Source: Podarcis bocagei
Taxonomy: Eukaryota
NCBI GenBank assembly: GCA_964188305.1
Contig: OZ076887.1
Direction: 5' to 3' (one strand)
DNA: 64,000 bases
Shown: in pieces, positions 25,901 to 28,900 of the stretch
How positions within the stretch are numbered: position 1 is the first letter of the stretch
How the letters are laid out: every line of letters starts with the position of its first letter
Notes under the pieces: generated by a model
Database searches by the model: none
What the model was told of the DNA's origin: nothing
What the model saw: only the letters and a program-made list of their open reading frames with translations
Translations under genes and position numbers: made by a program

Positions 25901-28900
25901 CAGCTCTTACTGTCAGGAAGTTCTTCCTAATGTTTAGGTGGAATCTTCTTTCTTGTAGTTTGGCTCCATTGCTCCGTGTCCGCTTCTCTGGAGCAGCAGA
26001 AAACAACCTTTCTCCCTCCTCTATGTGACATCCTTTTATATATTTGAACATGGCTATCATATCACCCCTTAACCTCCTCTTCTCCAGGCTAAACATGCCC
26101 AGCTCCCTTAGCCGTTCCTCATAAGGCATCGTTTCCAGGCCTTTGACCATTTTGGTTGCCCTCCTCTGGACACGTTCCAGTTTGTCAGTGTCCTTCTTGA
26201 ACTGTGGTGCCCAGAACTGGACACAATACTCCAGGTGAGGTCTGACCAGAGCAGAATACAGTGGCACTATTACTTCCCTTGATCTAGATGCTATACTCCT
26301 ATTGATGCAGCCCAGAATTGCATTGGCTTTTTTAGCTGCCGTGTCACACTGTTGGCTCATGTCAAGTTTGTGGTCAACCAAGACTCCTAGATCCTTTTCA
26401 CATGTACTGCTCTCAAGCCAGGTGTCACCCATCTTGTATTTGTGCCTCTCATTTTTTTTGCCCAAGTGCAATACTTTACATTTCTCCCTGTTAAAATTCA
26501 TCTTGTTTGTTTTGGCCCAGTTCTCTAATCTGTCAAGGTCGTTTTGAAGTGTGATCCTGTCCTCTGGGGTGTTAGCCACCCCTCCCAGTTTGGTGTCATC
26601 TGCAAATTTGATCAGGATGCCCTTGAGTCCATCATCCAAGTCGTTGATAAAGATGTTGAATAAGACCGGGCCCAAGACAGAACCCTGTGGCACCCCACTA
26701 GTCACTCTTCTCCAGGATGAAGAGGAACCATTGATGAGCACCCTTTGGGTTCGGTCAGTCAGCCAGTTACAAATCCATTGACCAGCTACTCAACAGCATG
26801 CAACTCCTGGTTGCCTCCCAAAAGCGTGCTTAAATACACACATTTCCTCATTAGAAAATAAATACATCCTCAGAGGAGGATCTCTCTCAAGGAAATATGA
26901 TTGCCCTTTCTTTCCAAGTCTACTCATCTCAGTCAGAAATCCTGACTGCTTCATCCCAGATGAAGTTTCCAATCTGCCACTTCTGAGCAGGAAATTGCAG
27001 AGTCTTGCATGTGGTTTAATGTTCAAGGGACATAAGCGCATCTGTTTCCCCACATTAGGTCATCTTGCCTGAATCTAGTAGAAGCCCTTACTGAACAGCT
27101 GCACTGCTTTTCCACAGCACATCTTCTAAGAAGGGGAACAAATCTACAGCTTTGCATTGTTAGCTGCACAACATGATTAATTAATCCATAGTTTAAAGCA
27201 CAAGAACAAAACAAATTGCCTGACAGTAGCACCTGCAGCAACAGTACGGTTCCAATAACAGCGGAGAAGACATGCAGCAGCCACTGTGTGGCTAGAAATA
27301 AAGAGACGCCAGCAAATTGGCTGCTGGTTCCGAGCAAGCCCTGTGGTGTAGTTGGGGAAGGCAGGGGGCCTAATAGGGTTTGTTTCCCCCAGAGAGTAAA
27401 GCATGAGACAGGGTGTAAATAGAGCCAAAGTAGACTGCAGAGCGAGTTAAGGGAAGAGCACAGAATGTGTTCATGTTGGGAAGGGCATGCAGAGAAGGAC
27501 TCTTAGAAGTACGTCAAAGGAGGAAGAAAGAGAGACACCAGCCAGGGTGGGGAGAAATCTAGCCAATTCTAAAGCAGCTGTTGAATGGCTGCTGTAGAAG
27601 ACAAAAGGCTGGCAAAATTGCATTGAGGGCTTTGAGGATCAGAAAGAAATGGAGCCAACCTCTTAGCAATTTGTTCATAAGCATCCAAACTAGCCAGTCC
27701 CTCCTCTTGTTTGCTGCCATCCCCCTCCTTCTGGCCCAAGATTCTCTGGGTGGTCCAAAAAGAATTTATCAAGGAAAGGTGATAAATTAAGAGCATATTT
27801 AGGCTCAGAGTGCATCTGCACAGGCTACACCACAAACAAAAAGCAGCAAAGGGCAGGCTTCAGTTTGTTCAAAATTGTCTCCTTTTCAGAGCAAACTGTA
27901 GCTGGGGGATCTCATTAAATCTCTGCTCTGTCCAGAGCTGTTTGCAATCAGCAAACTTTGCCCACCAGTGGTTTGCATGAGCAACAGACACTTGCAGTTC
28001 CATGATGTATGAATGAGCTCTTTGAATTCCCACTAGTACCTTCCCTCAGGAGTCAGTTCTTCTCTCCGTAGCTTAAAATCCAACTCTTCCAAGTTCTCTC
28101 TGCACTGGGTCAGCTTCTCCTCCAGGGTATCTATCTGAAACACACAGAAAACAACACCACGAATGAATGACTAGACTCTTCACCAACCGCTCAAAATGCC
28201 CACCTTGGGTTTGACTGGAGACTTGAAAAATGTTTCAGCTGTTCCACCCTCCAACAGAAAGAAGCAGGAGAGACAGCTGCAGATTGTATTCCCAGGCTGT
28301 TAAAGCAACAGGCAGAGCCTCTTGGTTGCTACTCGCCCCCTAAAAACACACATCTCTAGTGTCAAAAGCAGGGCAAAGAGGTTCACCTTCAGCACTCACC
28401 AAAAGCTGTATCTTGACACTTGATCTTAGCCAAAAGGCCGAGAAGCGATGCAAAAGCTGTATCTTGAAGGTGCTTTGTGGGACACACCTTTGTGGGAAGA
28501 GAAAATTCCCCAACTTAGGGGCTGCTGCAGAGAATGCCCTCTCCTGGGCTGCCACACCACCCACAGTGCCAAGCAGACACCCTCTGCCAATCTTGACACC
28601 CAAGAGGGTTTGTAGGGAAGGAAGTAGTCTTTTCAGGTATTTGAGCCTGAGTTGTTCAGGGCTTCCAATATAACGTAAGCTCCTTGAATTGGGCCTGGAA
28701 TTGAACTGTGCAGCTGTTTTAAAATAGGTTGTATTAGATCTGAAGGGAACCTCAGCCAGCAATCTGGTGGTGAAGCTCTACTCAGCATCCCTTCCTGCAA
28801 ATGGGCCTGCAATGAAGTTGGTTGCCGATCAGGGCTTTAAAGACACTAACTGGCACATGAGGTTACTCTCCAGTAACAGGAATCGCAAAATCCTCCTTTT

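Follow-up and report, generated by a model that had tools for sequence, protein, structure and literature searches.

We analysed a window of 64,000 nucleotides (nt) from the lacertid lizard Podarcis bocagei (GenBank assembly GCA_964188305.1, contig OZ076887.1) and found, inside the first intron of the gene CCDC167, an exact copy of the first 34 nt of U2 small nuclear RNA (snRNA), lying between the two halves of a perfect direct repeat. It is very probable that this insert is a 3'-truncated, 'tailless' U2 retropseudogene, dead on arrival, that was made by target-primed reverse transcription. Both of its boundaries speak for this origin: the left boundary is exactly at U2 nt 1, which argues for an RNA template rather than a DNA one, and the duplication of 16-17 base pairs (bp) argues for staggered nicks rather than for the repair of a chromosomal break.

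Read 5' to 3' on the minus strand, the locus consists of one copy of the repeat, a single C, U2 nt 1-34, the second copy of the repeat and the motif GTGAGT (coordinates are given in Table 1). The 34-mer matches U2 without a mismatch at this one place in the window, and 0 of 100 shuffles matched even with 3 mismatches allowed. A search with the Rfam model of U2 (RF00004) gives the insert 38.7 bits (E = 1.8e-6), which is short of the model's gathering score of 46. The alignment holds only at model positions 1-34, where the posterior is approximately 1.0, and the remainder is gaps and noise, so the insert is a fragment of U2 and not a U2 gene. We rejected the possibility of a functional U2 gene, which needs an RNA of about 190 nt with an Sm site and 3' stem-loops. 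No Rfam family reached its gathering score anywhere in the window. The copied portion of U2 begins with the 5' end, takes in stem-loop I and runs a short way into the linker, as far as G33-U34 of the branch-point recognition sequence. The Rfam consensus structure assigns positions 7-26 to stem-loop I and leaves those from 27 onwards unpaired, so the end of the copy at nt 34 falls in a single-stranded segment.

The direct repeat is perfect over 17 nt. Its innermost base is at the same time U2 nt 34, so the length of the duplication can be read as 16 or 17 bp. We estimate the chance that a perfect repeat of at least 16 nt abuts both ends of a given insert to be of the order of 1e-9. At the 3' junction, U2 nt 34 abuts the repeat directly, with that one base in common, and there is no run of A between the two; nor did reading of the junction reveal any sequence of a long or short interspersed nuclear element (LINE or SINE) there. 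At the 5' junction, the single C lies outside the repeat, because the base that follows the 3' repeat copy is a G, and it is not derived from U2 either. The GTGAGT motif is a pre-existing part of the target and lies outside the insertion. The earlier note on this DNA had described an exact minus-strand copy of U2 nt 1-34 with no poly(A) tail, one extra base at 28450 on its 5' side and a perfect 16-17 bp repeat, and our analysis bears it out on each of these points.

Table 1. Features of the U2 insert and of CCDC167, in coordinates of the window.
Feature	Position	Strand	Remarks
5' copy of target-site duplication	28451..28467	-	Perfect direct repeat; 16 bp, or 17 bp with the T at 28467
Extra base between 5' repeat copy and U2 nt 1	28450	-	C in sense orientation; untemplated or filler
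Exact copy of U2 snRNA nt 1-34	28416..28449	-	0 mismatches; Rfam U2 alignment at positions 1-34 only
3' copy of target-site duplication	28400..28416	-	Base 28416 doubles as U2 nt 34
GTGAGT directly 3' of the 3' repeat copy	28394..28399	-	Donor-like, as read from sequence only
CCDC167 exon 2	28040..28134	-	cag|ATA ... AAG|gta; Pfam PF15188, E = 5.7e-8, 33.3 bits against a cut-off of 27
CCDC167 exon 1, coding part (candidate)	43474..43515	-	ATG, 14 codons, GAG|gtgagg donor
CCDC167 last coding exon, with stop codon	19891..19994	-	C-terminal transmembrane-like tail ending ...CWTM

The insert is in the sense orientation within intron 1 of CCDC167, because exon 1, exon 2 and the last coding exon of this gene are all placed on the minus strand. 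We searched for the exons one by one and not as a joined model. Exon 2 is supported by Pfam, and the candidate for exon 1, which is too short for Pfam, is the sole K/R-rich ATG-to-GTRAG candidate that resembles the N-terminus of CCDC167. On its 3' side the U2 copy ends 281 nt, and the repeat 265 nt, before the exon 2 acceptor, in agreement with the earlier placement of the insert about 280 nt from the acceptor and in sense within this intron.

Tailless retropseudogenes, with U2 copies as one class, were reportedly described by Schmitz et al. in 2004, and Denison and Weiner are said to have distinguished classes II and III of 3'-truncated snRNA processed pseudogenes. The copy in P. bocagei is an ordinary, additional instance of a class that has already been catalogued in mammals and in the green anole. 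Noll et al. (2015) described a genome-wide extraction of tailless copies in which U2 is one of two marker RNAs (PMC5322556), and their file S1 gives counts of tailless U2 copies of 676 for human and 64 (61 per Gb) for Anolis carolinensis (PMC5322556). The anole is the sole non-mammalian vertebrate in which they report finding tailless copies, and they expect the L1 system of lizards to be a relaxed one (PMC5322556). We read the coordinates of 59 Anolis copies from their Table S6 (PMC5322556); 29 of these 59 measure 33-36 nt and 42 measure 31-41 nt, so a copy of 34 nt belongs to the modal class, the commonest form in lizards. The earlier note had stated that tailless U2 copies ending at about nt 33-38 were known from mammals; such copies do form the main class, in the green anole as well as in mammals (PMC5322556 Table S6; PMC4476161).

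Trait by trait, the insert looks like a member of this class. It comes from a cellular RNA and starts at the 5' end of that RNA (at U2 nt 1, with one base before it). Its 3' truncation, at nt 34, coincides with the modal end point of the Anolis and mammalian copies, and truncations in general are described as clustering in single-stranded segments (PMC4476161 section 8; PMC5322556). It has no oligo(A) tail, and its perfect 16-17 nt repeat is within the range of 8-30 nt that is usual for the flanking target-site duplications. An intact 5' end, a single-stranded 3' truncation, the absence of oligo(A), flanking duplications and a length of 33-36 nt are thus common to this insert and the U2 copies of Noll et al., whereas the host here is a lacertid and not an anole or a mammal. 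The insert also resembles Group II of Doucet et al. (2015), in which, likewise, a T in front of a purine stretch can be assigned to either the duplication or the snRNA; as presented there, the U2 data are mammalian and the lizard analysis is of U6 only (PMC4476161). The chimeras between snRNAs and LINEs, which arise by template switching (U6-L1) or twin priming (U5-L1), also have the 5' part of an snRNA copied inside one target-site duplication, but they carry a LINE or SINE part and the U2 insert does not.

A tailless U2 retropseudogene of this form would have been produced as follows. A LINE endonuclease would nick the bottom strand of CCDC167 intron 1 at cT/TCAAGAT (sense-strand reading), and the reverse transcriptase would start on U2 snRNA at U34, in the single-stranded linker that follows stem-loop I, and not on poly(A). 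Copying would then run to the capped 5' end of U2 and one untemplated base would be added, after which a second nick, 16-17 bp away from the first, would give rise to the target-site duplication. Thereafter the copy would merely be carried along within the intron of the CCDC167 pre-mRNA.

Several points weigh against this account and against L1 as its enzyme. The first is at the 3' junction. The internal-priming model, as set out by Noll et al., expects the last 2-18 nt of the annealed RNA to pair with the target (PMC5322556), whereas here the homology is only 1 nt (T34), U2 nt 35-44 being unlike the start of the repeat. The second is the nick site, which is cT/TCAAGAT if the duplication is read as 17 bp and TT/CAAGAT if it is read as 16 bp. 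The published consensus is TT/AAAA for L1 and TT/WAAAAWW for tailless copies (PMC5322556), and the match to them is loose, with approximately 6 of 9 positions fitting, much as the earlier note had judged it. The third is that we detected no L1 in the window by Pfam searches of the ten longest remaining open reading frames (ORFs), and a scan for poly(A) and repeats yielded a single weak candidate of 11 bp. Lastly, the L2 and RTE enzymes of Anolis are reported also to engage U6 (PMC4476161). The low junction homology weakens the internal-annealing step and not the membership of the class, because the published distributions of snRNA pseudogene junctions, in the data presented by Doucet et al., include junctions with low homology (PMC4476161). 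Either hardly any annealing was required for priming, or the reverse transcriptase used as its template a U2 fragment that already ended near nt 34. A search for human U2 fragments pre-cut near such ends, described by Noll et al., found none (PMC5322556).

We also observed that the target-site duplication starts with TCAAG (28463-28467 and 28412-28416, minus strand), which is the same as U2 nt 27-31. These bases precede the truncation point by three bases and are not in register with the junction. The match could be a coincidence, or it could be the trace of a first, slipped annealing.

The enzyme was most likely a relaxed LINE of the L1 type, which we prefer, by a modest margin, to all other lizard LINEs taken together. 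The earlier note had proposed either L1/Tx1 or the RTE/BovB machinery; the L1-type part of this proposal is the better fit, and the RTE/BovB part does not agree with the published signature of squamate Bov-B insertions, in which the duplication measures about 12 bp, a T-stretch lies about 10 nt upstream and the nick has TA (PMC13295347). An insert made by Bov-B or RTE was rejected on these grounds: the repeat is 16-17 bp long, there is no T-stretch upstream, the nick is at T/T or T/C, and there is no Bov-B tail.

It is nevertheless conceivable, at a probability that is low and still appreciable, that the same target-primed event on U2 RNA was carried out by some non-L1 lizard LINE (Bov-B/RTE, CR1, L2 or Tx1), an explanation that is nested within ours and differs from it in the enzyme only. 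Young CR1 copies (with paralogs of 96-98% identity in Podarcis) and Bov-B-type copies are both present within 3 kb of the insert, U6 chimeras with L1, L2 and RTE alike are described in Anolis (PMC4476161), and the nick site is a poor match to that of L1. On the other hand, stringent LINEs recognize their own 3' ends, and there is no such end at the insert. Besides the discrepancies with Bov-B listed above, the local CR1 copy has at most a short and imperfect flanking repeat, L2-type insertions are reported to make duplications of only 1-9 bp (PMC4476161), and across the vertebrates surveyed by Noll et al. tailless copies follow L1 activity (PMC5322556).

The two neighboring LINE-derived insertions are as follows. 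The 3' end of a Bov-B-type element (or Sauria SINE) is located at 29340-29577 on the plus strand, 0.9 kb from the U2 insert, and is flanked by a perfect 12 bp duplication, AGAACTGATGGC, at 29328-29339 and 29578-29589, which starts with A and matches the published Bov-B signature. It has copies with 91-93% identity in two other Podarcis loci (L001 and L002). The CR1 element, at approximately 25718-26790 on the minus strand, is 5'-truncated and has a (ATGATTCT)n 3' end. It retains an uninterrupted frame of 328 codons, 1.7 kb away from the U2 insert, for the C-terminal portion of a reverse transcriptase (Pfam RVT_1). It shares 96-98% identity with its relatives in Podarcis muralis and P. raffonei, a level of identity between paralogs which indicates that the CR1 family is young in lacertids. 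We considered these matches as candidates for the orthologous locus, and they proved to be paralogous copies elsewhere (in L001 and L002). A set of short repeats (29848-29981, 25730-25861, 34130-34205, 40306-40372 and 51561-51627), which are 67-134 nt long and 78-88% alike, overlaps the 3' end of CR1; this family probably consists of CR1 3' ends or of a CR1-dependent SINE.

Target-primed insertion of U2 RNA also has to be weighed against explanations that involve no such event. One of them, the capture of a fragment of U2 RNA or of its complementary DNA as filler during endonuclease-independent repair of a chromosomal break, could account for the 1 nt of microhomology on the 3' side, the filler base on the 5' side and the weakly L1-like nick site. 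We regard it as very unlikely, because a perfect target duplication of 16-17 bp is not a normal product of break repair, which usually deletes bases of the target. An assembly artefact or a chance resemblance is less probable again. A match of 34 out of 34 bases has an expectation of 0 by chance, and the perfect flanking repeat adds to it. Much of the surrounding 5.9 kb is present in contigs that come from nine studies and carry nine organism labels, which supports the locus and not the insert itself. Among these data, small contig sets labeled 'organism I', presumed to be RNA, contain 20-33% of the words sampled from the mostly intronic stretch 25500-31400, and they may be either low-coverage DNA or intron-rich RNA. 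A word search for orthologous loci that used a 74-amino-acid ORF from the flank gave no candidates.

The least probable explanation, to which we give almost no weight, is that the insert is what remains of a mobile element related to U2, be it the U2 flank of a Keno or Utopia element, a SINEU-like head, or a chimera of an snRNA and a LINE made by template switching. Keno (of the Tx1 clade) and Utopia (of the NeSL clade) are LINEs that target U2 genes, with the downstream part of U2 starting at nt 39, and reptile Utopia elements, whose specificity for U2 is weak, make 20 bp duplications of U2 itself (PMC4640811). They have in common with the insert a break in U2 near the branch-point recognition region and an occurrence in reptiles. 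However, they insert into U2 genes and break them at nt 38/39, whereas here a piece of U2 that ends at nt 34 lies in intron DNA and the repeat is non-U2 intron sequence. No reverse-transcriptase ORF adjoins the insert, both of whose flanks are duplicated intron DNA. The membership of a Keno/Utopia-type element that the earlier note had held out as a competing case therefore finds no support, either in the position of the break or in an adjoining element. SINEU-3 is closer in one respect, as it starts with a U2-derived head of about 32 bp and may itself descend from a trans-mobilized copy of U2 (PMC4494074). It is known only from crocodilians, is multicopy and targets a Mariner element, and beyond its head it has further U2 sequence, unique sequence and poly(A) (PMC4494074). 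More generally, SINEU elements combine a U1 or U2 head with a body and poly(A) in many copies, whereas the insert has neither body nor tail and is single-copy in the window. Its flanks have no paralog in 105 kb of lacertid DNA (the window together with L001 and L002, at word size 7), a search that is not informative on whether an L2 remnant adjoins it, as the earlier note had suggested.

As to the age of the tailless U2 copy, neither its 34 nt nor the two 16-17 nt repeats show any change, and both CpGs are intact. If neutral rates are near 1e-9 per site per year, the insertion could date from any time between the present and a few tens of millions of years ago. The earlier description of it as likely recent would follow only from the zero substitutions.

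Nothing suggests that the copy would have any function. It is without a U2 promoter, an Sm site, the 3' stem-loops and 3' domain, and of the branch-point recognition sequence it retains no more than two bases, so no working snRNA would come from it and it cannot act as U2. Nor could it contact the branch point, given its distance from the exon 2 acceptor. On the minus strand, the insertion is bracketed by a pyrimidine tract with AG at 28489-28488 and 28474-28473 and by a strong donor-like TTG|GTGAGT at 28400|28399, and the additional 51 bp bring the possible cryptic exon between them, otherwise 22 or 37 nt long, to 73 or 88 nt, lengths that are not multiples of three. It is at most a faint prospect, read off these motifs, that a U2-derived, frameshifting 'poison' exon might be spliced into some CCDC167 transcripts, or that the sense U2 segment, which includes the bases that pair with U6, might act in cis on the splicing of intron 1.

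Taken alone, the insert is of little import: it is a further dead 34-nt fragment of U2, in a class that numbers hundreds of copies per mammalian genome and dozens in the green anole. Its near-absence of microhomology at the junction bears slightly on the question of whether such copies originate by internal annealing or from RNA that had already been cut.

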